Source: Phyllobates terribilis
Lineage: Eukaryota
Assembly (NCBI RefSeq): GCF_046119375.1
Contig: NW_027362762.1
Span: 500,216,001 to 500,280,000 of the forward strand
DNA: 64,000 nucleotides
Direction: 5' to 3'
The translations under genes were made by a program, and so were the position numbers. Below the pieces are notes generated by a model. It saw only the letters and a program-made list of their open reading frames with translations, did no database searches and had not been told where the DNA came from. Positions 3,501 through 60,014 of the stretch are shown in pieces. Position 1 is the first letter of the stretch. Every line of letters starts with the position of its first letter.

Positions 3501-6500
3501 TGTTACCCAACACTGTTAACCCCTTCACGACATCCGCCGTATATCTACGATGCCACAAGAAATGCGTTCCTGCAAACCAGCATACATGTACAGTGCGACG
3601 ACTGCGCCTGCTCACCAGCAGACCCGGCGAAATCATCAACGGGTGTCATCTATACATCATAGCTGACACCATGCAGCAATGCCCACGATTGGTGCTAGTG
3701 CCAATCGAGGGCATTTAACCCCATTGATGCAATGTACTTACAGAGGGAGGGAGCTCTCTCTATACTTTGATCGGCACAGAGCAATTGCATCATATCGATA
3801 ATCTCCATGGTGACCCCAGGCTGAAAAATGGCAGCAAGGTCATCCAGGTATGGTGGCCTGTAAGGGTCCTGCCAGGACTTGACACTCCTCTTGCCTGTGT
3901 CTGATTGACAGCTCTAATACCCTGCAATGCAAAATCAATGCAGAGTATTAGATCAGCGATCAGGCTAGGAAAAGTTGATGCCGCATACTGGGGCCAAAAA
4001 GAAAAGTAATAAAAAGGTGAAATAAAGTTTGTAAATATGTGAAAAAATAAACGGGAAATTACGGAAAAAAAAATAGAAAAATGTTTTGCAAGTAAAAAAT
4101 CTGGTTATTTCTGTAACAAAAGTAAAGGAAAAAAAGTACACGTTTGGTATGGCCGCGTCTGTAACAAACCAATCTATAAAACGGTCATATTATTTAACCC
4201 ATTTGGTCAACGTTGTAAAAAATAAAATAAAAAAAAAGGACCAAAAATATAGCTGTTTTGTAATACTAACACACAAATCATAGAATAAAAAAAGTGATAA
4301 AAAAAAATGCATACAAAAAATTGGTTCAAAAGCATAAAGTGGGAAGGCACCTCCAGTTAAAACAATCTTCAAACTTCATTTCATATCAAAAAGGAGAATA
4401 AAAATTTACACATGTTGGCGGTAAAAACACTGACGCGTTTCTGGCGCTGAGCGCGCCCTTAGTCATAGAGCATCCCAAAAAAAATCGTATTAATAAAAAC
4501 ATCATCTTGTCCCCCAAAAACAAGCCGTTACATAGCTCCGTTGTCAAAAAAATAAAGTTACAGCTATCAGAGTATGATGATGAAAAAACATAAAAAATCT
4601 ATATTAATCTGGTATCACTAATATCAAAATGACCCAAAGAATAAAGTTGCCTGATCACTTTTACCGCACAGAGAATGGCGTGAAAAAAAATATAAACATT
4701 TATGAATTTCTGGTTTTTGTTCACTCTGCCACCCATAAAATTGAAAAAAAAAAGCGATCAAAAATGGTATGTAATCCAAAATGGTACAAATAAAAACGTC
4801 AACTCACCCCACAGAAAAGAAGCCCCCACACAGCTTGTTCAGCGGAAAAATAAAAAAAGATATATCTCTCAAAATATGGCAATGCAATAACAAATACTTT
4901 TTTTTGTAAATCAATGTTTTAGCGTGCAAATTATGAACATACTTTATAACAAAGGTGTTGTTGTAATAGTACTTACCCAAAGAATAAAGTTGTCATATCA
5001 CGTTTACTGCGAGGTGAACAGCGTAAAAAAAGGAAGACAATTCATGAATTGCTTTTTATTTGTTCACTTTATTTCTCAAAAATTCAAATAAAAAGCAAAT
5101 AAAAAATGCACCCCCAGATAGCACCAATTAAAACATCATCTCATCCTGCAAAAGTCAAGTCCCATCTCAGATTTGATGAAGGAAAAATAGAGGCTGTCCA
5201 TTCTCCTAGTAGTTCAGAGGCGTTGGAAAAGCGACATGGCTACCTAAAAAAAAAACAATCTAATAAAATCCAAGCTCGGAAAGGCAAACCCCCCCCCCCC
5301 CCTTATGAGCACCCCAGCGTACCCAAACCACACTTAACATCAATATCTATGGCATTGCTGCAAAGGGGAGAATGCACTTAGCGGGGTTCTCTGGGTCTAA
5401 TCATTGATGATCTAGCAGCTGCATATTTATTCAATATGAGATCGGTGGGAGTCCGACACCAGCATACCCACCTATCTGCTGAAAATGGCTCCGGCAGTGG
5501 CCGGACCTTAGCGATGTGCGAGCGCAACACCACAGCAGCCCTGTACATTTCTTAGTAGATGAGTACTGAGCTTTATCTCCCATTGAAGTGAATGTACTGT
5601 AGTATTCAGGCAGCAGCCACAAAGCAATGTACAGGGTTGCTGTATATAGCCCATACATCACTTAGGCTAGGTCCCCTTATCCATGCACCTAACATACAGT
5701 ATATACGTCTGGAAACTTTTCCAGACGTATATGGTAATGGCCGACCATTCACCAGACGAGGCTAAAAGTGTGTTCTTTCAGTCTCCGTTTATCCTGCATG
5801 CACTTATGTAAATGTATAAGAAAGCGCAGCAGATTGCACTTCCCTATACAGGGGGACACTGCAAAGAGATGTAAACCATGCAACATCTCTCTTTATAGTG
5901 GGCCCCTATAGTGGATGGATCTATCCTGACAGAGCACACTGACGGGCTCATACCTCCCGGGCTTATGCATACTACAGTGTCCACAAGCGCAGTGTGGACT
6001 TAGCCTTAGTTTGGGCCACTGCCCGAGAGGTTTCAGCTGATCGTGAGAGTGTTGGATCCCCACCAATCTTTTATTGTGATGAGCTGTCAATTATTAGGTC
6101 CTGGACAACCTTTTTAACAATTTATGCGGCACATGTCTCTAGAAGCACAAGCCGGGAACTATCTATTGGGCACTAAAATGGCATATTTGTAATTTTCACG
6201 CTGCAACATCCATTGTGCATTGTGCACTGATTTTTGGAGAATGCCAATGGGGTCAAAAAATAGTCACTACACCCCTAGATGATTTCGCTGAGTGTAATTA
6301 GCAAAATGGGGTCAACTTTTCGGGGATTTCTGCTGTTTTAGAAACTCAGTGGCTCTGCAAATGGTGCCCAAACTACTTTAGGAAAATCTGCTCCCTAAAA
6401 GCCAAATGGCATTCTCCCTATTCTGAGCCCTGCAATACACCCAAACAAAAGTGTATGACCACATATAGGGTATTGCTGCATTCGGAAGAAATTGCTTTAT

Positions 6501-15000: not shown

Positions 15001-18000
15001 ATTCATACAGTGGTTGCCCTTTTGTCTTACTGGAATGTGCACTTTGTAGATTCAAACTGAAGGCATCAGACACAAGTGAACACATGTAGAAACAAACCAG
15101 AGCGTTTTAAACCATAGATTCCTCAAAGTCACACAGCTTTACACACGTTTGGTATCCTCTCAAGCAGCTTCATCAGGTAGTCGCCTAGAATGGCTTCCAA
15201 TGAACAGACGTGATTTGTCAAGATTTTTTTGTGAAATCACCAGCCTTCAGAAAGCGTTTGTGACCATCAGGTATGTTCTGCCGAGGAAGTGTTGGTACAC
15301 ACTGTTTCATACAGTGCTGAATGCTATTCCACAACCATTCTCAGCCAGAATATGGCAAGAACCACTCAACCAAGAAAGCAGAAATGTCTGTACATTATTA
15401 CATTAAGACATGATAGTCAGGCGCTCTCAATTTGTGTTTTCTGAGGCTGCTACCTCTGATGAACTTATCCTCTCCAGCGGAGATAATTCTAGGACCCCCT
15501 TTCCTGTGGTGGCCCTCACAAGAACCAGTTTAATCTTAGCAATTGATGGTTTTCATTACTGCTCTGTGTGATCATTATGTGGCTTTTACAATGTAAGCCT
15601 ATAGAGTGTCAGAATGAGGCTCCATAGGCATTCATTGTAAAATAGACTTTCGGATCACCCATGGAGTGAGCTGGCTAGTCCCAATTGCGGCAACGTCACT
15701 GACAAGCGAAGCAGGATGGCGCTGGACACCGGAGAAAGCAGCTGTAGGTGAGTATATTGATACTTGCAGTATATTACATGTATGCACACTTATTAAAGCA
15801 CCACTCCAGCTGGCTTTTTATTGCACCACTGGAGTGGTGCTTTAAATGCAAGTCCCCTGTCTGATAGTCACCTGCCGCCTTCATCAGTTTCCAGTGTCAT
15901 TCCGGTTAGTCTCCGGCAAAAAGTGACATGCTTGCAGATCCAGTGTTTCATGGAGCTGCATGGAGGTCACTTTTGAATAAAAGTCTATGAGAGCCTTGTT
16001 TTGGCTCTAATAGACTTGTATTGAGAGCGTGTGCCATAGCTCCTGGCTTCCAGCCAGTCAGAAGCTACTATTACAAGATGGCACAAAGGGACTGGAGCGG
16101 CACCGAAAAAACTGCGCCGGAGGGTGAGTATGTGACCGGTGCTAGGGGGCTTAGATTTAAAGTGCCATTCCAGCGCTGAAAAAAAAACCCCGCTGAGTAG
16201 TGCTTTAAAAAAAAAAAAAAGGTGAGTACCTTCGTAAACCTGAAATTATTCGGTTGGTGATATGATTCATAGCTTTAGATACGTAAGCTATATCTTATAG
16301 GTGCATTTTATATTTCACCTTGTTTACTTGTGTACCTCTATTTCACTATATACAGTTAGGTCCATATATATTTGGACAGAGGCAACATTTTTCTAATTTT
16401 GGTTCTAGACATTACCACAATGAATTTTAAACAAAACAATTCAGATGCAGTTGAAGTTCAGACTTTCAGCTTTCATTTGAGGGTATCCACATTAAAATTG
16501 GATGAAGGGTTTAGGAGTTTCAGCTCCTTAACATGTGCCACCCTGTTTTTAAAGGGACCAAAAGTAATTGGACAGATTAAATAATTGTAAATAAAATGTT
16601 CATTTCTAGTACATGGTTGAAAACCCTTTGTTGGCAATGACTGCCTGAAGTCTTGAACTCATGGACATCACCAGACGCTGTGTTTCCTCCTTTTTGATGC
16701 TTTGCCAGGCCTTCACTGCGGTTGTTTTCAGTTGCTGTTTGTTTGTGGGCCTTTCTGTCTGAAGTTTAGTCTTTAACAAGTGAAATACATGCTCAATTGG
16801 GCTGAGATCAGGTGACTGACTTGGCCATTCAAGAATATTCCACTTCTTTGCTTTAATAAACTCCTGGGTTGCTTTGGCTTTGTTTTGGGTCATTGTCCAT
16901 CTGTAGTATGAAAAGATCGACCGATCAGTTTGGCTGCATTTGGCTGGATCTGAGCACACAGTATGGCTCTGAATACATCAGAATTCATTCGGCTGCTTCT
17001 GTCCTGTGTCACATCATCAATAAACACTAGTGACTCAGTTCCACTGGCAGCCATGAATGCCCAAGCCATCACACTGCCTCCGCCGTGTTTTACAGATGAT
17101 GTGGTATGCTTTGGATCATAAGCTGTACCACGCCTTCGCCATACTTTTCTCTTTCCATCATTCTGGTAGAGGTTGATCTTGGTTTCATCTGTCCAAAGAA
17201 TGTTCTTCCAGAACTGTGCTGGCTTTTTTAGATGTTTTTTTAGCAAAGTCCCGTCTAGCCTTTTTATTCTTGATGCTTATGAGTGGCTTGCACCGTGCAG
17301 TGAACCCTCTGTATTTACTTTCATGCAGTCTTCTCTTTGTGGTAGATTTGGATATTGATACGCCTACCTCCTGGAGAGTGTTGTGCACTTGGTTGGCTGT
17401 TGTGAAGGGGTTTCGCTTCACCATGGAGATGATTCTGCGATCATCCACCACTGTTGTCTTCCGTGGGCGCCCAGGTCTTTTTGCATTGATGAGTTCACCA
17501 GTGCTTTCTTTCGTTCTCAGGATGTACCAAACTGTAGATTTTGCCACTCCTAATATTGTAGCAATTTCTCGGATGGGTTTTTTCTGTTTTTGCAGCTTAA
17601 GGATGGCTTGTTTCACCTGCATGGAGAGCTCATTTGACAGCATGTTTACTTCACAGCAAAACCTTCCAAATGCAAGCACCACACCTCAAATCAACTCCAG
17701 GCCTTTTATCTGCTTAATTGAGAATGACATAACGAAGGGATTGCCCACACCTGTCCCTGAAATAGCCTTGGAGTCAATTGTCCAATTACTTTTGGTCCCT
17801 TTAAAAACAGGGTGGCACATGTTAAGGAGCTGAAACTCCTAAACCCTTCATCCAATTTTAATGTGGATACCCTCAAATGAAAGCTGAAAGTCTGAACTTC
17901 AACTGCATCTGAATTGTTTTGTTTAAAATTCATTGTGGTAATGTCTAGAACCAAAATTAGAAAAATGTCTCTGTCCAAATATATATGGCCCTAACTGTAT

Positions 18001-26700: not shown

Positions 26701-27648
26701 TTTTTAACAAGATTCAGTACCACAGGGTATAAAATGGTAAACATCAAATAGTGACTGAAATGTGAATAGCCTGAGTGGCTGAATCCTGAAGCACATACGT
26801 CTCCAAAAAGAAGCCATCTGCTATAATCTGTTAGATTTCTTTTTGGATTCATGTGCTATCAATTGCAAAATAGCCCCTACTTGGGTAAAATGGAAGGATC
26901 GCTTTTCCTTCAGAATCTAAATCTATAGCACTACCAGGCTTCTGTAGTATACTTTGTACTATGTAAACCTCAAACTAATAATTTAGTACAGGCGTTTGCC
27001 AGCAATTATCTTTTCTCTGGCCCCCAAAGTGTTATAACGGCAGCTGCGTTTGGCCGTCTGCCATTCCTTTTAATTTTTGTATTACTCTACAGGACGCTGC
27101 AGAGCGTGCAATGGAAGATTACGTCAGTCAGGACATACTCTGTGAGTGGAGTTAGCGCACAATGCAGCGCCTCCAGTGACGTCTATGCCCCAGCCACGGG
27201 TCCCCAGTGACGTCTATGCTCCAGCCACATGTCACTAGTGAGGTTGGCTGTGGCTGTATATGCCCCAGACACATGTCCCCAGTGTCTCCAGTGATGTCTA
27301 TGCCTCAGCCACATGTCTCCAGTGATGACTATGCCCCATCTCAGTGTCTCCAGTGACGTATGCCTGAGCCCCATGTCTCTAGTGAGGTTGGCTGTGGATG
27401 TATATGCCCCAGCCACATGTCCCCAGTGTCTCCAGTGATGTCTATGCCTCAGCCACATGTCTCCAGTGATGACTATGCCCCATCTCAGTGTCTCCAGTGA
27501 CGTATGCCTGAGCCCCATGTCTCTAGTGAGGTTGGCTGTGGATGTATATGCCCCAGCCACATGTCCCCAGCAGCGACGTCTATACCCTAGCCCCATCCCA
27601 GTGTCTCCAGTGACGTCTATGCCCCAGCCACATGTCTCCAGTGATGTA

Positions 27649-29264
27649 CAGTGCATTGTGAAAGTATTTGGCCCCCTTGAACTTTTCTACCCTTTGCCAC
27701 ATTTCTGGCTTCAAACATAAAGATATAAAATTCTAATTTTTGGGGGAAGAAACAACAAGTGGGACACAATCTTGAAGTGGAACGAAATTTATTGGATATT
27801 TTAAACTTTTTTACATTGAAAAGTGGGGTGTGCAATATTATTCGGCCCCCTTGAGTTAATACTTTGTAGCGCCACCTTTTGCTGCGATTACAGCTGCAAG
27901 TCGCTTGGGGTATGTCTCTATCAGTTTTGCACATCGAGAGGCTGAAATTCTTGCCCATGCTTCCTTGCAAAACAGCTCGAGCTCATTGAGGTTGGATGGA
28001 GGGCGTTTGTGAACAGCAGTTTTCAGCTCCTTCCACAGATTCTCGATTGGATTCAGGTCTGGACTTTGACTTGGCCATTCTAACACCTGGATACGTTTTA
28101 TTTTTGAACCATTCCATTGTAGATTTTGCTTTATGTTTGGGATCATTGCCTTGTTGGAAGATAAATCTCTGTCCCAGTCTCAGGTCTTTTGCAGACTCCA
28201 ACAGGTTTTCTTCCAGAATGGTCTTGTATTTGGCTCCGTCCATCTTCCCATCAATTTTAACCATCTTCCCTATCCCTGCTGAAGAAAAGCAGGCCCAAAC
28301 CATGATGCTGCCACCACCTTGTTTGACAGTGGGGATGGTGTTTTGAGGGTGATGAGCTGTGTTGCTTTTACACCAAACATATCGTTTTGCATTGTGGCCA
28401 AAAAGTTCGATTTTGGTTTCATCTGACCAGAGCACCTTATTCCACATGTTTGTTGTGTCTCCCAGGTGGCTTGTGGAAAACTTCAAATGAGACTTTTTAT
28501 GGATAGCTTTGAGAAATGGCTTTCTTCTTGCCACTCTTCCATAAAGGCCAGATTTGTGCAGTGTACGACTGATTGTTGTCCTATGGACAGACTCTCCCAC
28601 CTCAGCTGTAGATCTCTGCAGTTCATCCAGAGTGATCATGGGCCTTGTGGCTGCATCTCTGATCAGTCTTCTCCTTGTTCGAGATGAAAGTTTAGAGGGA
28701 CGGCCGGGTCTTGGTAGATATGCAGTGGTCTGATACTCCTTCCATTTTAATATGATAGCTTGCACAGTGCTCCTTGAGATGTTTAAAACTTTGGAAATCT
28801 TTTTGTATCCAAATCCGGCTTTAAACTTCGCCACAACAGTATCTCAGACCTGCCTGGTGTGTTCCTTGGTCTTCATGATGCTCTCTGCACTTGAAACAGA
28901 ACCCTGAGACTATCACAGAGCAGGTGCATTTATACGGAGACTTGATTACACACAGGTGGATTCTATTTATCATTACCAGTCATTTAGGACAACATTGGAT
29001 CATTCAGAGATCCTCACTGAACTTCTGGAGTGAGTTTGCTGCACTGAAAGTAAAGGGGCCGAATAATTTTGCACGCCCCACTTTTCATTTTTTTTTTTTT
29101 AAAGTTTAAAATTTCCAATAAATTTTGTTCCACTTCATGATTGTGTCCCACTTGTTGTTGATTCTTCCCCAAAAAGTTAGAATTTGATACCTTTATGTTT
29201 GAAGCCAGAAATGTGGCAAAAGGTAGAAAAGTTCAAGGGGGCCAAATACTTTCACAATGCACTG
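27649..29264 (-). mobile_element. Full-length Tc1 (DD34E) transposon, defective
   Basis: TA TSD; TIR CAGTGCATTGTGAAAGTATTTGGCCCC; ATG near 28876 (MKTKEHTRQV*), early stop, catalytic QQDND changed to QQGND, frameshift before [12 protein letters not shown]. Confidence 0.95.
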
Positions 29265-30681
29265 TATATGCCTCAGCCACATGTCTCCAGTGATGTCTAT
29301 GCCTCAGCCACATGTCTCCAGTGATGTCTATGCCTCAGCCACATGTCTCCAGTGATGTCTATGCCTCAGCCACATGTCTCCAGTGATGTCTATGCCTCAG
29401 CCACATGTCTCCAGTGATGTCTATGCCTCAGCCACATGTCTCCAGTGATGTCTATGCCTCAGCCACATGTCTCCAGTGATGTCTATGCCCCATCCCAGTG
29501 ATATATATGCCCCAGCTACATGTCTTCTGTGACGTGTATGCCCCAGCTACATGTCTTCTGTGACGTGTATGCCTCAGCCCCATGTCTCCTGTGATGTATA
29601 TGCCTCATCTCAGTGTCTCTAGTAACGTATATGCCTTGGCCTCATATCTCCAGTGCTGTCTATGCCCCATCAGTGTCTCCAGTGACGTCTATGCCCCAGC
29701 CACATATCTCCAGTGATGTCTGTGCCCCAGCCCAGTGTCTCCAGTGATGTCTATGCCTCAGCCACATGTCCCCAGTGATGTATATGCCTCAGCCACATGT
29801 CTCCAGTGATGTCTATGCCCCATCCCAGTGTCTCCAGTGACGTCTATGCCCCATCCCAGTGTCTCCAGTGACGTCTATGCCCCAGCCACATATCTCCAGT
29901 GATGTCTATGCCTCAGCCACATGTCCCCAGTGATGTCTATGCCCCATCCCAGTGTCTCCAGTGATGTCTATGCCCCATCCCAGTGTCTCCAGTGATGTCT
30001 ATGCCCCAGCCACATGTTTCCTGTGATGTATATGCCCCATCTCTGTTTCTCCAGTAACGTATATGCCTCAGCCACATATCTCCAGTCATGTCTATACCCC
30101 ATCAGTGTCTCCAGTGATGCCTATACCCCATCAGTGTCTCCAGTGATGCCTATACCCCATCAGTGTCTCCAGTGATAGCTATGCCCCCATTACAGTCTCT
30201 AATGATATCTATGCCCCTTCCCAATGTCTCCAGTGACGTCTATGACCCTTCCCAATGTCTCCAGTGACGTCTATGCCCCAGCCACATATCTCCAGTGATG
30301 TATATGCCACTGCCCAGTGTCTTCAGTGATGTCTATGCCCCAGCCACATGTCCCCAGTGACGTCTATGCCCAAGCCCCATCTCTGTGTCTCCAGTGATGT
30401 CTATGCCTCAGCCACGTCTCCAGTGATGTATATGCCTCAGCCACGTCTCCAGTGATGTATATGCCACAGCCACATGTCTCCAGTGATGTATATGCCCCAG
30501 CCACATGTCTCCAGTGATGTATATGCCTCAGCCGCATGTCTCCAGTGATGTCTATGCCCCATCACAGTGTTTCCAGTGATGTCTATGCCCCATCACAGTG
30601 TTTCCAGTGATATCTACGCCCCTGCCCAGTGTCTCCAGTGATGTACAGTATATGCCCCTGCTCAGTGTCTCCAGTGATGTA

Positions 30682-32250
30682 CAGTACAGACCAAAAGTTT
30701 GGACACACCTTCTCATTTAAAGATTTTTCTGTATTTTCATGACTTTCAAAATTGTACATTCACACTGAAGGCATCAAAACTATGAATTAACACATGTGGA
30801 ATTATATACTTAACAAAAAAGTGTGAAACAACTGAAAATATGTCTTATATTCTAGGTTCTTCAAAGTAGCCACCTTTTGCTTTGATGACTGCTTTGCACA
30901 CTCTTGGAATTCTCTTGATGAGCTTCAAGAGGTAGTCACCGGAAATAGTCTTCCAACAATCTTGAAGGAGTTCCCTGAAATGCTTAGCACTTGTTGGCCC
31001 TTTTGCCTTCATTCTGCAGTCCAGCTCACCCCAAACCATATCGATTGGGTTCTGGTCTGGTGACTGTGGAGGCCAGGTCATCTGGCGTAGCACCCCATCA
31101 ATCTCTGTCTTGGTCAAATAGCCCTTACACAGCCCTGAGGTGTGTTTGGGGTCATTGTCCTGTAGAAAAATAAATGATAGTCCAACTAAACGCAAACCGG
31201 ATGGAATAGCATGCCGCTGCAAGATGCTGTGGTAGCCATGCTGGTTTAGTATGCCTTCAATTTTGAATAAATCCCCAACAGTGTCACCAGCCAAGCACCC
31301 CCACACCATCACACCTCCTCCTCCATGCTTCACGGTGGGAACCAGGCATGTAGAGTCCATCCGTTCACCTTTTCTGCGTCGCACAAAGACACGGTGGTTG
31401 GAACCAAAGATCTCAAATTTGGACTCATCAGCGCAAACAAATCTCTTCTGCTTGTTGCCTGTCCTTAGCAGTGGTTTCCTAGCAGCTATTTTACCATGAA
31501 GGCCTGCTGCACAAAGTCTCCTCTTAACAGTTGTTGAAGAGATGTGTCTGCTGCTAGAACTCTGTGTGGCATTGACCTGGTATCTAATCTGAGCTGCTGT
31601 TAACCTGTGATCTCTGAGGCTGGTGACTCGGATAAACTTATCCACAGAAGCAGAGGTGACTCTTGGTCTTCCTTTCCTGGGGCGGTCCTCATGTGAACCA
31701 GTTTCTTTGTAGCGCTTGATGGTTTTTGCAACTGCACTTGGGGACACATTCAAAGTTTGCGGACTGACTGACCTTCATTTCTTAAAGTAATGATGGCCAC
31801 TCGTTTTTCTTTACTTAGCTGCTTTTTTCTTGCCATTATACAAATTCTAACAGTCTATTCAGTAGGACTATCAGCTGTGTATCCATCAGACTTCTGCACA
31901 ACACAACTGATAGTCCCAACCCCATTTATAAGGCAAGAAATCCCACTTATTAAACCTGATAGGGCACACCTGTGAGGTGAAAACCATTTCCGGTGACTAC
32001 CTCTTGAAGCTCATCAAGAGAATGCCAGGAGTGTGCAAAGCAGTCATCAAAGCAAAAGGTGGCTACTTTGAAGAACCTAGAATATAAGACATATTTTCAG
32101 TTGTTTCACACTTTTTTGTTAAGTATATAATTCCACATGTGTTAATTCATAGTTTTGATGCCTTCAGAGTGAATGTACAATTTTCAAAGTCATGAAAATG
32201 CAGAAAAATATTTAAATGAGAAGGTGTGTCCAAACTTTTGGTCTGCACTG
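30682..32250 (-). mobile_element. Near-full-length Tc1-like transposon of DD38E (Intruder-type) spacing
   Basis: TA TSD; TIR CAGT.CAGACCAAAAGTTTGGACACACCTTCTC; ORF 30845..31753 has 38 residues between the D of QDND and the final acidic residue (here D); short internal deletion before DESKF. Confidence 0.9.
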
Positions 32251-32407
32251 TATATGCCCCTGCTCAGTGTCTCCAGTGATGTATATGCCCCTACCCAGTG
32301 TCTCCAGTGATGTATATGCCCCATCCCAGTGTCTGCAGTGATGTCTATGCCTCAGCCACATGTCTCCAGTTATGTCTATGCCTCAGCCACATGTCTCCAG
32401 TGATGTA

Positions 32408-32476
32408 CAGGTGCATCTCACTAAATTAGAATATCATCAAAAAGTTAATTTATTTCAGTTCTTCAATACAAAAAGT
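32408..32476 (+). mobile_element. 69-bp terminus of a third Tc1 family
   Basis: gatgTA-CAGGTGCATCTCACTAAATTAGAATATCATCAAAAAG; truncated by the PLE-like module. Confidence 0.65.
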
Positions 32477-32615
32477 ATGCTCTATGACTAAGGGCGCGCT
32501 CAGTGCCAGAGTGTTTTTACCGCCAACTTGTGGAAATTTTTATTTTGCTTTTTGATATGAAATAAAGTTTGAAGATTATTTTAACTGGAGGTGCCTTCCC
32601 ACTTTACGCTTTTGA
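32477..32615 (+). mobile_element. Penelope-like/hammerhead module copy 2 (9-nt deletion AAACGCGTC)
   Basis: Reverse complement of 4326-4473 with identical ends; has AATAAA in the tail. Confidence 0.65.
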
Positions 32616-32839
32616 TGGGTCTCCAGTGATGTATATGCCCCAGCCCCGAAGTCTCCTGTCATGTGTATGCCCCAGCCCCGATGTCTCCTGTATGTACAGC
32701 AGCCTCTGTGTCTCCTGTGTGAATATACAGCAGCCTCTGTGTCTCCTGTGTGAATATACAGCAGCCTCTGTGTCTCCTGTCATGTGTATGCCCCAGCCCC
32801 GATGTCTCCTGTGTGATGTATATACAAACCTTCACACTA

Positions 32840-35374: not shown

Positions 35375-36069
35375 TTAATTCTGAGTTGCTGGATCACGCT
35401 GGGGGTTACGTGTGAACTAGAAGTCACCTGTACAAGGAAAGAGATGTGGTGTCATAAGCAAGGTAAGTGAAAGCAGTGCTTCCTCACAGCTTCTATTACT
35501 GCCTTCAAATGAACTGTAATTAGGGGTTGGTGATAGAAGCAGGGTGATAACACCACCGCTCCCTGAAACAACTCGTGTGAGAGCGGTGACAGAGGCTGAG
35601 AGGTGGTGTTTCTACCCCTGATGATGTCTCATTTCAGGGAGAGATGGTGGTGATAGAAGCAGGGACTGTGGTGGGCAGGGCCGGCGTCAGCGCCCGGCGC
35701 ACCCGGGCAAGTGCCGGGCCCTGAGCAGGTGGGGGGGCCCACTCACTGTTGGGCAACCCGCTGCACTATTGGACCCGTGAGCAGGGCAGTGCCGGTGTCA
35801 GCGCCCGCTCCCCCCACGCCTGCTCAGCAGCCGGCACAATACTTACCTCTCCCTGTGCCTCCGCAGCAGCTGCGGTCTTTTCCGCGTCCTCTGACTGTGA
35901 CGTCTCAGGTCAGAGGGTGCGGTGACGTCTTTACACCACGCTCTCTCCTGAGCCGTCACAGCGCAGAGCAGGAAGACGCTGGAGACGCTGGAGTCCGGAG
36001 CTGCGGCAGCAGGTGAGAAGTGAGGTGAGTATTTGATTATTCTTATTTTTTTTTTTTAATGTATGGAGG

Positions 36070-39000
36070 CATGGGGCATTATAAGGGAGGGTGTGTGTGT
36101 GACATCCTGCATGGTGCATAATACGGGGGGGGGGGGTGACATCCTGCATGGGGCATTATAAGGGAGGGGGGGTGACAATGCATGGGGCATTACAGGGGGG
36201 GTGACATAATGCAAGGGGCATAATAAGGGAGGGGGTGACATCCTGCATGGGGCATAATAAGGGGGGGGGTGACATAATGCATGGGGCATAATAAGGGGGA
36301 GTGACATCCTGCATGGGGCATTATAAGGGGGGTATGACATTCTGCATGGGGCATAATAAGAGGGGGGTGACATCCTGCATGGGGCATAAGGGAGAGTGAC
36401 ATCCTGCATGGGGCATTATAAGGGGGAGTGACATCCTGCATGGGGCATTATAAGGGGGGTGACATAATGCATGGGACATTATAAGAGGTGAGTGACATCC
36501 TGCATGGGGCATTATAAGGGGGGTGACATCCTGCATGGGGCATTATAAGGGAGGGGGTGTGACAATGCATGGGGTATTATAGGGGGGGTGACATAATGCA
36601 AGGGGCATAATAAGGGAGGGAGTGACATCCTGCATGGGGCATTATAAGGGGGGGTGACAATGCATGGGGCATTATAAGGGCGGTATGACATTCCGCATGG
36701 GGCATAATAAGAGGGGGGTGACATCCTGCATGGGGCATAAGGGAGAGTGACATCCTGCATGGGGCATTATAAGGGGGAGTGACATCCTGCATGGGGCATT
36801 ATAAGGGGGGTGACATAATGCATGGGACATTATAAGGGGTGTGTGACATCCTGCATGGTGCATTATAAGGGGGGGTGACATTGCATGGGGCATTATAAGG
36901 GGGGGTGACATTCTGCATGGGGCATAATAAAGGGGGTGACATCCTGCATGGGGCATAATAAGGGGGGTGACATCCTGCATGGAGCATAAGGGGGGTGACA
37001 TCCTGCATGGGGCATTATAAGGGGGGTGACATCCTGCATGGGGCATTATAAGGGGGGGTGACATCCTGCATGGGGCATTATAAGGGGGGGTGACATCCTG
37101 CATGGGGCATTATAAGGGGGGTGACAATGCATGGGGCATTATAGGGGGGGTGATATAATGCATGGGGCATTATAAGGGGAGATGACATCCTGCATGGGGC
37201 ATTATAAAGAGGGGGGGTGACAATGCATGGGGCATTATAAGGGGGGTGACATCCTGCATGGGGCATTATAAGATGGGATGACATCCTGCATGGGGCATTA
37301 TAAGGGAGGGGGGGTGACATCCTGCATGGGCATTATAAGGGGGGGGTGACAATGCATGGGGCATTATAAGGGGGGGATGACATTCTGCATGGGGCATAAT
37401 AAGGGGGGGTGACTCCCTGCATGGGGCATAATAAGGGGGGTGTGACATAATGCATGGGGCATTATAAGGGGGAGTGACATCCTGCATGGGGCATTATAAG
37501 GGAGGGGGGTGTGTGACATCCTGCATGGGGCATTATGGGGGGGACATCCTGCATGGGGCATTATAAGGGAGGGGGGGTGACATCCTGCATGGGGCATAAT
37601 AAGGTGGAGTGACATAATGCATGGGGCATTATAAGGGGGGATGACATCCTGCATGGGGCATAATAAGGGGGGGGGTGACATCCTGCATCGGGCATTATAA
37701 GGGGGGGTGACATAATGCATGGGGCATTATAAGGGGGGTGACATAATGCATGGGGCATTATAAGGGGGGGTGACATCCTGCATGGGGCATTATAAGGGGG
37801 GAGACATCCTGCATGGGGCATTATAAGGGGGGAGACATCCTGCATGGGGCATTATAAGGGAGGGGGGGTGGCATCCTGCATGGGGCATTATAAGAGAGGG
37901 GGGTACATCCTGCATGGGGCATAATAAGGTGCGGTGACATAATGCATGGGGCATAATAAGGGGGGATGACATCCTGCATGGGGCATAATAAGGGGGGGTG
38001 ACATAATGCATGGGGCATTATAAGGGGGGTGACATCCTGCATGGGGCATTATAAGGGGGGATGACATCCTGCATGGGGCATTATAAGGGGGGGTGACAAT
38101 GCATGGGGCATTATAAGGGGGGGATGACATTCTGCATGGGGCATAATAAGGGGGGGTGACTCCCTGCATGGGGCATAATAAGGGGGGTGTGACATAATGC
38201 ATGGGGCATTATAAGGGGGAGTGACATCCTGCATGGGGCATTATAAGGGGGGGGTGACAATGCATGGGGCATTATAAGGGGGGGATGACATTCTGCATGG
38301 GGCATAATAAGGGGGGGTGACTCCCTGCATGGGGCATAATAAGGGGGGTGTGACATAATGCATGGGGCATTATAAGGGGGAGTGACATCCTGCATGGGGC
38401 ATTATAAGGGAGGGGGGTGTGTGACATCCTGCATGGGGCATTATGGGGGGGACATCCTGCATGGGGCATTATAAGGGAGGGGGGTGACATCCTGCATGGG
38501 GCATAATAAGGTGGAGTGACATAATGCATGGGGCATTATAAGGGGGGATGACATCCTGCATGGGGCATAATAAGGGGGGGGATGACATCCTGCATCGGGC
38601 ATTATAAGGGGGGGTGACATAATGCATGGGGCATTATAAGGGGGGTGACATAATGCATGGGGCATTATAAGGGGGGGTGACATCCTGCATGGGGCATTAT
38701 AAGGGGGGAGACATCCTGCATGGGGCATTATAAGGGGGGAGACATCCTGCATGGGGCATTATAAGGGAGGGGGGGTGGCATCCTGCATGGGGCATTATAA
38801 GAGAGGGGGGTACATCCTGCATGGGGCATAATAAGGTGCGGTGACATAATGCATGGGGCATAATAAGGGGGGATGACATCCTGCATGGGGCATAATAAGG
38901 GGGGGTGACATAATGCATGGGGCATTATAAGGGGGGTGACATCCTGCATGGGGCATTATAAGGGGGGATGACATCCTGCATGGGGCATTATAAGGGGGGG

Positions 39001-39200
39001 TGACATCCTGCATTGGGCATTATAAGGGAGGGGGGGTGTGACATCCTGCATGGGGCATTATAAGGAGGGGGGTGTGTGTGACATCCTGCGTGGGGCATTA
39101 TAAGGGAGGGGGGGGTGTGACATCCTGCATGGGGCATTATAAGGGGGGGACATCCTGCATTGTGCATTATAAGGGGGGGAGGGGACAGCCTGCATGAGGC
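36070..39200 (+). repeat. G-rich minisatellite, unit about 30-34 bp (gtgacatcctgcatggggcattataagggggg), roughly 100 copies
   Basis: Direct reading; identical ORF-track translations recur at a 907-bp offset. Confidence 0.97.
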
Positions 39201-39226
39201 ATCATTTGGCAGGGAACAGCCTGCAT

Positions 39227-39418
39227 GGAGCGTTATATGGGGGCCAGTATTCTGTATGGAGCGTTATATGGGGGCCAGTATCCTGTATGGAGCGTTATAT
39301 GGGGGCCAGTATTCTGTATGGAGCTTTATAAGGGGACCAGTATCCTGTATGGAGCGTTATATGGGGGCCAGTATTCTGAATGGAGCGTTATATGGGGGCC
39401 AGTATCCTGTATGGAGCG
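39227..39418. repeat. 31-bp minisatellite (ggagcgttatatgggggccagtat(c/t)ctgtat), about 6 copies
   Basis: Period 31 (39227/39258). Confidence 0.9.
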
Positions 39419-39471
39419 ATTCTATTCACAATAGATATCCCTCATGTAATGTAAGTGAAATCTTTGGCATT

Positions 39472-39475
<4 letters not shown>

Positions 39476-39556
<81 letters not shown>
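39476..39556. repeat. (TA)n microsatellite, about 40 units
   Basis: Direct reading. Shorter (TA)n tracts at about 18065-18101, 40668-40690 and 59409-59447. Confidence 0.98.
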
Positions 39557-39558
<2 letters not shown>

Positions 39559-40118
39559 CTCTGCGGTATCTGTGCATCATGAACCGTGGTATGTGTTAAA
39601 GGGGCCCACTGAAACTCTTTCGCCCGGGGCCCACAAAAACCTGCAGCCGGCCTTGGTGGTGGGGCCACTGAAGTTACAAGTTGGGGGCAGAAGTGTGGTG
39701 GTGGCCACTGAAGCTGGGGTCAGTGCTTCATCATTATGGGGGTGACAGAAGCTGTGAGAAGTGACAGCAGTACCCTGTACTTTTCGCACTGCAGACAATT
39801 CCCTCTGTGGTGAGCACACGGTGTCTGACAGGCCGTCCATGAGAGCAGCTAAGGCAGCCAATCAGACGCCAGCTTTCTTTCTTCCCAGGTCAGATAAACA
39901 ATGTGAGGAGTGATCTGGTTGGGTAGTGGCTCGCAGCACACGGCCGTACCCTCCACTAGTGCTCCTGTAATAAGCGCGCTGCCGCCGTTCACACATCAGC
40001 AGTACTCTGCCGGCTCCCAGCAGGCGCGCTCAGCACTGCATAGAGGGTGGGCCAGGCTTATATATCCGCTCGTCGCCGCCACCTCCCCTTGTCCCTCCTT
40101 CCTTGCGCGCACTCCATC

Positions 40119-60014
<19,896 letters not shown>

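Follow-up and report, generated by a model that had tools for sequence, protein, structure and literature searches.

The 64,000-nt stretch of the Phyllobates terribilis genome analysed here (contig NW_027362762.1, positions 500,216,001 to 500,280,000; hereafter the window) contains, near its beginning, a 148-nt repeat unit which is inserted in AT-rich repetitive DNA and which we designate copy A. A second, incomplete copy, designated copy B, lies beside satellite DNA in the same window. The beginning of the unit, when read on its sense strand, which is the minus strand, carries the letters of a hammerhead ribozyme of the minimal type I. Copy A is probably a decayed stand-alone copy of an abundant retroposon-like repeat bearing a hammerhead motif of the kind found in Penelope-like elements. 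The positions of the unit, of the parts of the motif, and of the related features are collected in Table 1.

Table 1. Positions in the window of the repeat unit, its hammerhead-like motif, and associated features (hammerhead numbering where applicable)
Feature	Position	Strand	Basis
Repeat unit, copy A, 148 nt (sense strand = minus)	4326..4473	-	Second copy with identical ends; contig depth edges
Hammerhead-like motif with possible 7-position helix I (4467-4473 with 4431-4425)	4425..4473	-	Sequence, pair list, energies
Core positions 3-9, AUGACUA	4466-4460	-	A3 4466, U4 4465, G5 4464, A6 4463, C7 4462, U8 4461, A9 4460
Core plus unpaired A between positions 9 and 10.1 (unpaired A = 4459)	4459..4466	-	Sequence
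Helix II: G10.1 (4458)-A11.1 (4442) mismatch plus 5 G-C-rich pairs (4457-4453 with 4447-4443)	4442..4458	-	Sequence, folds
G12 A13 A14 A15.1 (4441-4438), palindrome CGCG (4437-4434), U16.1 (4433)	4433..4441	-	Sequence
Predicted scissile bond, C17 (4432) / A1.1 (4431)	4431..4432	-	Follows from hammerhead numbering
Competing hairpin, 4442-4435 paired with 4430-4423	4423..4442	-	Minimum-energy fold
Repeat unit, copy B	32477..32615	+	blastn within window; 88.5% identical, same first and last bases
Tc1-type transposase genes	27983-28834 and 30845-31753	-	Pfam HTH_Tnp_Tc3_2, HTH_SB, DDE_3

The repeat unit and its family

The host of copy A is an older repeat, AT-rich and ~300-340 bp long, which carries the insertion in its unit 1 and lacks it in the paralogous units 2 and 3. 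When compared with these paralogous units, no target-site duplication is visible around copy A. The host repeat occupies positions 4230-5330 as three degenerate head-to-tail units with a mean column identity of 56%, and no hammerhead or other Rfam match was obtained in this region or its surroundings. Copy B lacks 9 nt, AAACGCGUC (gap at 32509/32510), and is thus devoid of the GAAA, helix III, and the cleavage site. This deletion is private to copy B, as it is not among the common indels of the family, and the lone contig with 9 gaps probably corresponds to this copy. The flanks of copies A and B are unrelated to each other, copy B being bounded on one side by a Tc1-like terminal fragment of 70 nt and on the other by a 31-bp satellite. 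Apart from copy B, no other copy of the 42-nt hammerhead piece exists in the window within 14 mismatches.

The ~70 nt located before copy B (32407-32476) resemble a Tc1-like terminal inverted repeat and begin directly after a TA of the 31-bp satellite; further copies of this fragment are not present in the window. The remainder of the Tc1-like transposon is absent beside copy B and the satellite resumes right after copy B, which indicates either an insertion accompanied by deletion or a rearrangement at this place.

The extent of the family was estimated with Logan contigs from four runs of the same organism (X1, X5, X7, and X8), which were placed on positions 4260-4540 at 80% likeness. Runs X1 and X7 come from two different DNA studies; no run is on record as RNA, and X5 and X8 are possibly RNA. 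The contigs placed over the whole 281-nt stretch, neighbouring repeat included, number 442 in X1 and 154 in X7. Summed contig depth amounts to hundreds to thousands within 4326-4473 and drops more than 6-fold at each end. The initial annotation, made from the letters of the window, had proposed a discrete 148-nt mobile module, and this is borne out by the identical ends of copy B together with the sharp depth edges at 4326 and 4473. The 148-nt unit is a discrete, very abundant dispersed repeat family of this frog. A gradient of depth among the contigs, which might be taken for 5' truncation, was set aside, the figures being sums of k-mer depth to which a few contigs contribute most. The 41-nt piece of the host repeat adjoining the unit (4480-4520) is itself extremely abundant, with a summed depth of up to ~8,000 in X1, and is also covered in the small runs X5 and X8, for X5 as the sole part of the stretch; the flanks of this piece in other copies agree at 0.6-0.8 among themselves.

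In many contigs the match to the unit is confined to positions 4430-4470, and the sequence beyond it to either side is AT-rich and unlike (loose ends: 33 and 24 in X1, 25 and 19+11 in X7). Additional contigs arriving from the 3' side end at 4431, and breaks at 4430/4431 are frequent from either side. On the basis of these unlike flanks, the 41-nt hammerhead piece recurs as a module in other contexts, with a seam no more than one or two bases away from the predicted scissile bond. Contigs of X8, a run only guessed to be RNA, cover 4430-4470 as well, and one of them repeats the 40-nt piece (4470 back to 4431). Two contigs contain head-to-head joints between opposite strands, one linking 4431 with 4473 and the other 4405 with 4465.

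Letters, variation, and folding of the motif

The minus-strand reading of 4421-4478 agrees exactly with the letters given in the initial annotation; its mapping of the motif as a type I minimal hammerhead holds on this strand, with the predicted cut between 4432 and 4431 as stated there. The motif as drawn there spans 4427-4471 (minus strand). In hammerhead numbering, the 5' strand of helix I is 4471-4467 and the 3' strand 4431-4427, which as first drawn form three Watson-Crick pairs, one G-U pair, and one U-U mismatch; when helix I is extended to seven positions, five of the seven are paired in copy A. The loop of helix II is GCUCA (4452-4448). The sequence ACGCGU (4438-4433) is self-complementary, and helix III can be formed only between two copies, with all six intermolecular pairs being standard. 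The letters required of a hammerhead, i.e., G5, A6, A9, G12-A14, A15.1-U16.1, and C17, are all present: GAAA at 4441-4438 and U at 4433 supply G12-A13-A14 and A15.1-U16.1, and the C at 4432 is a non-G at position 17. The conserved core C3-U4-G5-A6-N7-G8-A9, in contrast, reads A-U-G-A-C-U-A, with positions 3 and 8 both deviating and pairing between them still possible.

Among the family contigs no alternative letter reaches 5% at 4466 (A3), 4461 (U8), or 4442 (A11.1). These three letters are therefore the state of the family, inherited from its founder, and the question of whether A3 and U8 are fixed in the family can be answered in the affirmative, with no consensus of C3 and G8 behind them. 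The A3-U8 combination had been described as apparently compensatory. The possibility of pairing stands, whereas compensation is not demonstrated, because positions 3 and 8 are invariant in the family and no covariation can be counted; two changed letters will pair by chance about 1 time in 3. Elsewhere in the motif the changes seen in the family are one-sided only, with no double compensatory changes among the contigs. The hairpin of helix II has only small indels in loop and stem, and helix III has CpG-type changes of 5-10% at each of the positions 4434-4437. At position 17 (4432) the variants are C to U and C to A, at ~7% each, with G below 5%. The decay of the dispersed copies is neutral.

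The two most polymorphic positions of the unit in X1 and X7 are 4429 (41-45%; the alternative makes 1.3 an A) and 4426 (26-36%; the alternative makes 1.6 a G). They are exactly the two mismatches of the 7-position helix I which begins at the first base of the unit (4473), and both alternatives restore a pair. The chance of the top two of 148 places landing there is ~1 in 10,000, and that of both merely falling within the 7-nt strand ~2 in 1,000, where both figures are rough and partly post hoc estimates.

In the predicted folds the hairpin of helix II is always present. The minimum-energy fold of copy A retains helix II, and a competing hairpin within this fold (Table 1) buries the GAAA and helix III along with the 3' strand of helix I. 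The energy of the fold is -17.3/-17.4 kcal/mol vs. -7.4 kcal/mol for the hammerhead-compatible fold, a gap of ~10 kcal/mol. When the alternative alleles at 4429 and 4426 are combined, helix I has 7 pairs, the hammerhead-compatible fold improves to -14.5 vs. -17.4 for the minimum, and the minimum-energy fold retains helices I and II. These ViennaRNA energies cover nested folds only, and a double hammerhead made of two molecules is crossed, i.e., pseudoknot-like. Copy A is not expected to cleave, since it is a monomer without a nearby partner, with a mismatched helix I and a favoured competing hairpin.

It might be argued that the motif at the copy A locus is itself an active ribozyme which processes a host transcript, as the essential letters are present and positions 3 and 8 can pair. 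Nothing else speaks for this proposal and we regard it as very improbable. The monomer would have a helix III of 1 bp and there is no second copy within 28 kb, copy B has lost the catalytic segment, and helix I is mismatched in competition with a hairpin that is ~10 kcal/mol more stable. Moreover, even the canonical Penelope motifs show poor cleavage in vitro (PMC4209133).

Relation to Penelope-type hammerheads and retrozymes

Minimal hammerheads were described by Cervera and de la Pena (PMC4209133) in the pseudo-LTRs (LTR, long terminal repeat) of Penelope-like elements. Helix I of these motifs is short (4-5 bp) and helix II long (6-8 pairs), with one nucleotide left unpaired between 9 and 10.1; their G10.1-C11.1 pair is highly conserved, and 15.2-16.2 or loop 3 is palindromic. 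The motifs occur mostly as solo copies, with ~9,000 motifs in Xenopus tropicalis, and even the canonical ones have very low activity in vitro, where they cleave only as dimers. The frog motif shares with them the short helix I, the G-C-rich helix II, the extra unpaired base after A9, and the GAAA followed by the palindrome and UC, which allows helix III only between two copies. Like them, the frog copies are present in high number, are dispersed and for the most part solo, and are decaying. The extra A after A9 had been left without interpretation in the initial annotation; it is a published hallmark of the class (PMC4209133) and one of the matching features for which the candidate had not been selected. 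The mapping of the motif to the type I minimal hammerheads of Penelope-like elements is supported. The frog motif differs from the described ones in its 3-8 pair, which is A-U and not C-G or U-A, in the G-A mismatch in place of G-C at 10.1-11.1, and in a helix II of 5 pairs vs. 6-8. In addition, no Penelope gene or pseudo-LTR was identified beside copy A or copy B.

A pairing-preserving change at 3-8 has a precedent in the covariant U3-A8, of which ~1,300 copies were reported in Schistosoma (PMC4209133). Natural U3-A8 hammerheads have also been described by Perreault et al. (2011, PMC3088659), along with exchanges of the 3-8 pair that are active in vitro. As in those hammerheads, the C3-G8 tertiary pair of the frog motif is swapped for another Watson-Crick pair. 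The orientation A3-U8 is the opposite one, however, and the U3-A8 hammerheads are otherwise consensus, whereas the frog motif is further altered at 11.1. That natural hammerheads tolerate one more unpaired base where helix II begins on its 5' side is known from a viroid, in which an extra A separates A9 from G10.1 (De la Pena & Flores 2001, cited in PMC4209133); according to that citation, the viroid motif, unlike that of the frog, has a canonical core and stable helices. A full-text search of the literature did not find A3-U8 in connection with hammerheads and found U3-A8 in one paper only; a published A3-U8 case may exist. Judged from its letters, the A3-U8 core appears to be a new variant of the Penelope-type hammerhead in an orientation which that search did not find.

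In the Penelope element of the anole (Frangieh et al., PMC11167929) the motif is located at the junction of pseudo-LTR and open reading frame (ORF), reverse transcription begins ~85-92 nt past the cut site, and the targets are AT-rich. The ribozyme of that element cleaves only with protein and is dispensable for insertion in vitro (PMC11167929). By comparison, the frog unit ends 106 nt past the predicted cut and sits in AT-rich DNA. An ORF starting at the motif, as in the anole element, was considered and rejected: A3-U4-G5 does constitute an AUG, but the reading frame that it starts ends after 26 codons, and all frames of the unit are interrupted. The head-to-head joints in two frog contigs are of the same kind as the inverted 5'-truncated copies which are typical of Penelope insertions (PMC8557442).

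Several results weigh against a Penelope-type hammerhead. The highly conserved G10.1-C11.1 pair is replaced by G4458 opposite A4442; the initial annotation had cautioned as much, and the absence of the G-C pair holds family-wide (no variant of at least 5% at 4442). The hammerhead piece is, by a crude count, no less variable than the rest of the unit, and the changes in helix III are those of ordinary CpG decay. A helix I paired at seven of seven positions assumes that the 4429 and 4426 alleles occur together in one copy. Fold stability is no better than that of shuffles (motif, z = -0.83; unit, z = -0.17). The 5' end of the unit is fixed at 4473, as opposed to the ragged 5' truncation expected of long elements. 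Rfam gave no hammerhead family at the gathering score for the window, nor at E<=10 for segments of 301 and 4,501 bases, with models that may or may not cover Penelope-type minimal motifs well. A gene for a Penelope reverse transcriptase or GIY-YIG protein was not found among the ORFs of the window of at least 130 aa. The link to Penelope is therefore architectural, being inferred from architecture, the types of contig joints, and the literature.

The only Rfam match, to HIV-1 SL4 (E value 4.9), was dismissed as meaningless. Exact-pattern scans of metagenomes (with the hammerhead piece and with the 3' part of the unit) and of viral sequences produced no match; frog DNA is not expected there and these blanks are uninformative.

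The rarity of the motif was assessed with two descriptors. One tailored to the candidate had 0 matches in 300 Markov-shuffled windows. The general descriptor took the published minimal hammerheads of Penelope elements as its model. Any Watson-Crick pair was accepted at 3-8, the unpaired base was optional, and the palindrome could measure 0-6 nt; helix II had to have at least 4 pairs, with one mismatch allowed, and helix I 3 of its 4 pairs. This descriptor matched 0.0625 times per shuffled window, a rate which fell to 0.0025 when a 4-nt palindrome was demanded, while in the actual 64-kb window the candidate is the sole match. The motif string is thus unlikely to arise by chance in one window, yet it might be met in a whole-genome scan, and over hundreds of windows the motif alone is indecisive.

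A chance look-alike has to be considered, i.e., an ordinary SINE (short interspersed element), MITE (miniature inverted-repeat transposable element), or transposon fragment in which a G-C hairpin followed by GAAACGCGUC mimics a hammerhead and A3 and U8 are coincidental. At 0.06 matches of the general descriptor per window, dozens would be expected over 773 windows of this genome. The blank in Rfam, the three letters by which the motif departs from the conserved core (one of them the A of the G-A at 10.1-11.1), the missing signal of fold stability, and the invariance of positions 3 and 8, hence without covariation, all agree with such an origin. We nevertheless consider it unlikely, given the rate of only 0.0025 per window with the 4-nt palindrome, the fit of the unselected extra base after A9 and of the palindrome with the published motif (PMC4209133), the recurrence of the 41-nt piece elsewhere with unlike flanks, and the coincidence of the top two polymorphic sites with the helix I mismatches. 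A tRNA-derived SINE in particular is contradicted by the want of a tRNA-like head, for which ARAGORN returned a blank, and by runs of T on the minus strand that would stop RNA polymerase III. A Helitron 3' end on the plus strand, suggested by a hairpin near the end, was rejected as well, since the terminus is GCAT rather than CTRR and the other end is also fixed.

A further comparison is with the animal non-LTR retrozymes and the amphibian satellite-2 hammerhead repeats, with which the frog unit shares a short AT-rich non-coding sequence and a type I hammerhead (PMC7229834; bioRxiv 10.64898/2026.07.22.740005). As in the animal non-LTR retrozymes, helix III is very short and needs a dimer, the host is an amphibian, and monomer derivatives are common (PMC7229834). 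These retrozymes are thought to be mobilised by Penelope elements (PMC7229834; bioRxiv 10.64898/2026.07.22.740005), and those of vertebrates have been argued to derive from Penelope pseudo-LTRs (bioRxiv 10.64898/2026.07.22.740005). Copies A and B, in contrast, are single dispersed units and not tandem head-to-tail arrays like those of retrozymes, which give rise to linear and circular RNAs. Furthermore, the frog unit has 148 nt vs. an average of 316 bp in amphibian retrozymes, and, unlike canonical retrozyme hammerheads, its motif is without contacts between the loops of helix I and helix II and its core is non-canonical.

On the minus strand the unit starts with AUGCUCUAUGA (4463-4473) and ends with AUGCUUUUGA (4326-4336), the two being alike at 9 of 11 positions when one gap is allowed. 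Such a short direct repeat at the termini may be a product of chance, or else of copying that went slightly further than a single turn round a circular or tandem RNA. In the latter case the unit would be a monomer from a small retrozyme, i.e., from a hammerhead RNA, tandem or circular, of which one turn of ~138 nt and a little more had been copied; to this possibility we assign little probability. Such an origin would explain the similarity of the two ends, and it is compatible with published vertebrate retrozyme families, where units are 51-972 bp and the monomer fraction ranges from 0 to 1 (bioRxiv 10.64898/2026.07.22.740005), as well as with the X8 contig in which the 40-nt piece returns on itself (4470 to 4431). 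However, the head-to-tail joint that it predicts, 4326 to 4473, is not among the listed contig joints, the similarity of the ends is short and could be due to chance, and both copies in the window are single units. A small-retrozyme monomer is, moreover, a sub-case of a Penelope-type hammerhead repeat rather than a true alternative to it.

For the decayed copy of a Penelope-type hammerhead repeat, the following course of events may be proposed. The first ~45 nt of the repeat, with minus as the sense strand, would be a minimal hammerhead as in Penelope pseudo-LTRs and their non-autonomous derivatives, the animal non-LTR retrozymes. The founder would already have had the three departures from the core, i.e., A3 and U8, which are still pairable, and A at 11.1, and would have passed them to all copies. 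In the living element the motif would pair with a second copy via the palindromic ACGCGU to form helix III, and the dimer would then cut after GUC, where a protein of the element might assist. Both the descent from Penelope-type elements and the dimer mechanism are matters that we infer. That the A3-U8 core with its G10.1-A11.1 mismatch is a working natural hammerhead, such that master copies cleave, or once cleaved, after GUC as dimers or with the aid of the Penelope protein, is possible and on balance rather doubtful.

If the master copies were active, this would be the first described natural A3-U8 hammerhead, as far as the literature search shows. Cleavage by members of the family would amount to a natural experiment on the C3-G8 tertiary pair, in which the active site would need the pair and not the identity of the base of G8, and this in an orientation so far undescribed from natural hammerheads. 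The family, if truly of this kind, would constitute a poison-frog lineage of mini-elements, with 148-nt dispersed units and short tandem arrays, that has been missed by CUGANGA descriptors and Rfam. The initial annotation had anticipated that a standard CUGANGA search would miss the motif, and it does, as the core deviates at positions 3 and 8; Rfam is blank as well. Regardless of activity, hundreds of copies of a Penelope-type motif would be invisible to descriptors with a consensus core and to Rfam. Amphibian counts of hammerheads, Penelope remnants, and retrozyme-like repeats would thus be too low, an undercount that is avoided only if all Watson-Crick combinations are allowed at 3-8. For the copy A locus itself, a decaying solo copy, nothing follows.

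Other features of the window

The large ORFs of the window encode Tc1 transposases and a gypsy-type reverse transcriptase/RNase H, not Penelope genes. A long array of the ~31-bp satellite extends over 27170-32830 and is interrupted by the Tc1-type transposase genes. A fragment of a Tc1-type transposase, comprising the DNA-binding part, is located at 17185-17682 (minus strand). The ORF at 50849-53868 (709 aa) has reverse transcriptase and RNase H domains of the LTR-retrotransposon type. It is preceded by an ORF of 297 aa with a weak match, above threshold, to the LAP2alpha domain (E value 5e-10), which is unexpected upstream of a retroelement polymerase. Positions 50277-50418 are an assembly gap or masked run.

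The region 36001-40000 has a very strong skew of G over C (0.36-0.49) and ~52% G+C over 4 kb, unlike other parts of the window, and is probably a strand-asymmetric G-rich repeat. Finally, an ORF of 175 aa at 21335-21862 matches the first part of an FHA domain over its final 29 residues (E value 1e-4) and is possibly a host exon.

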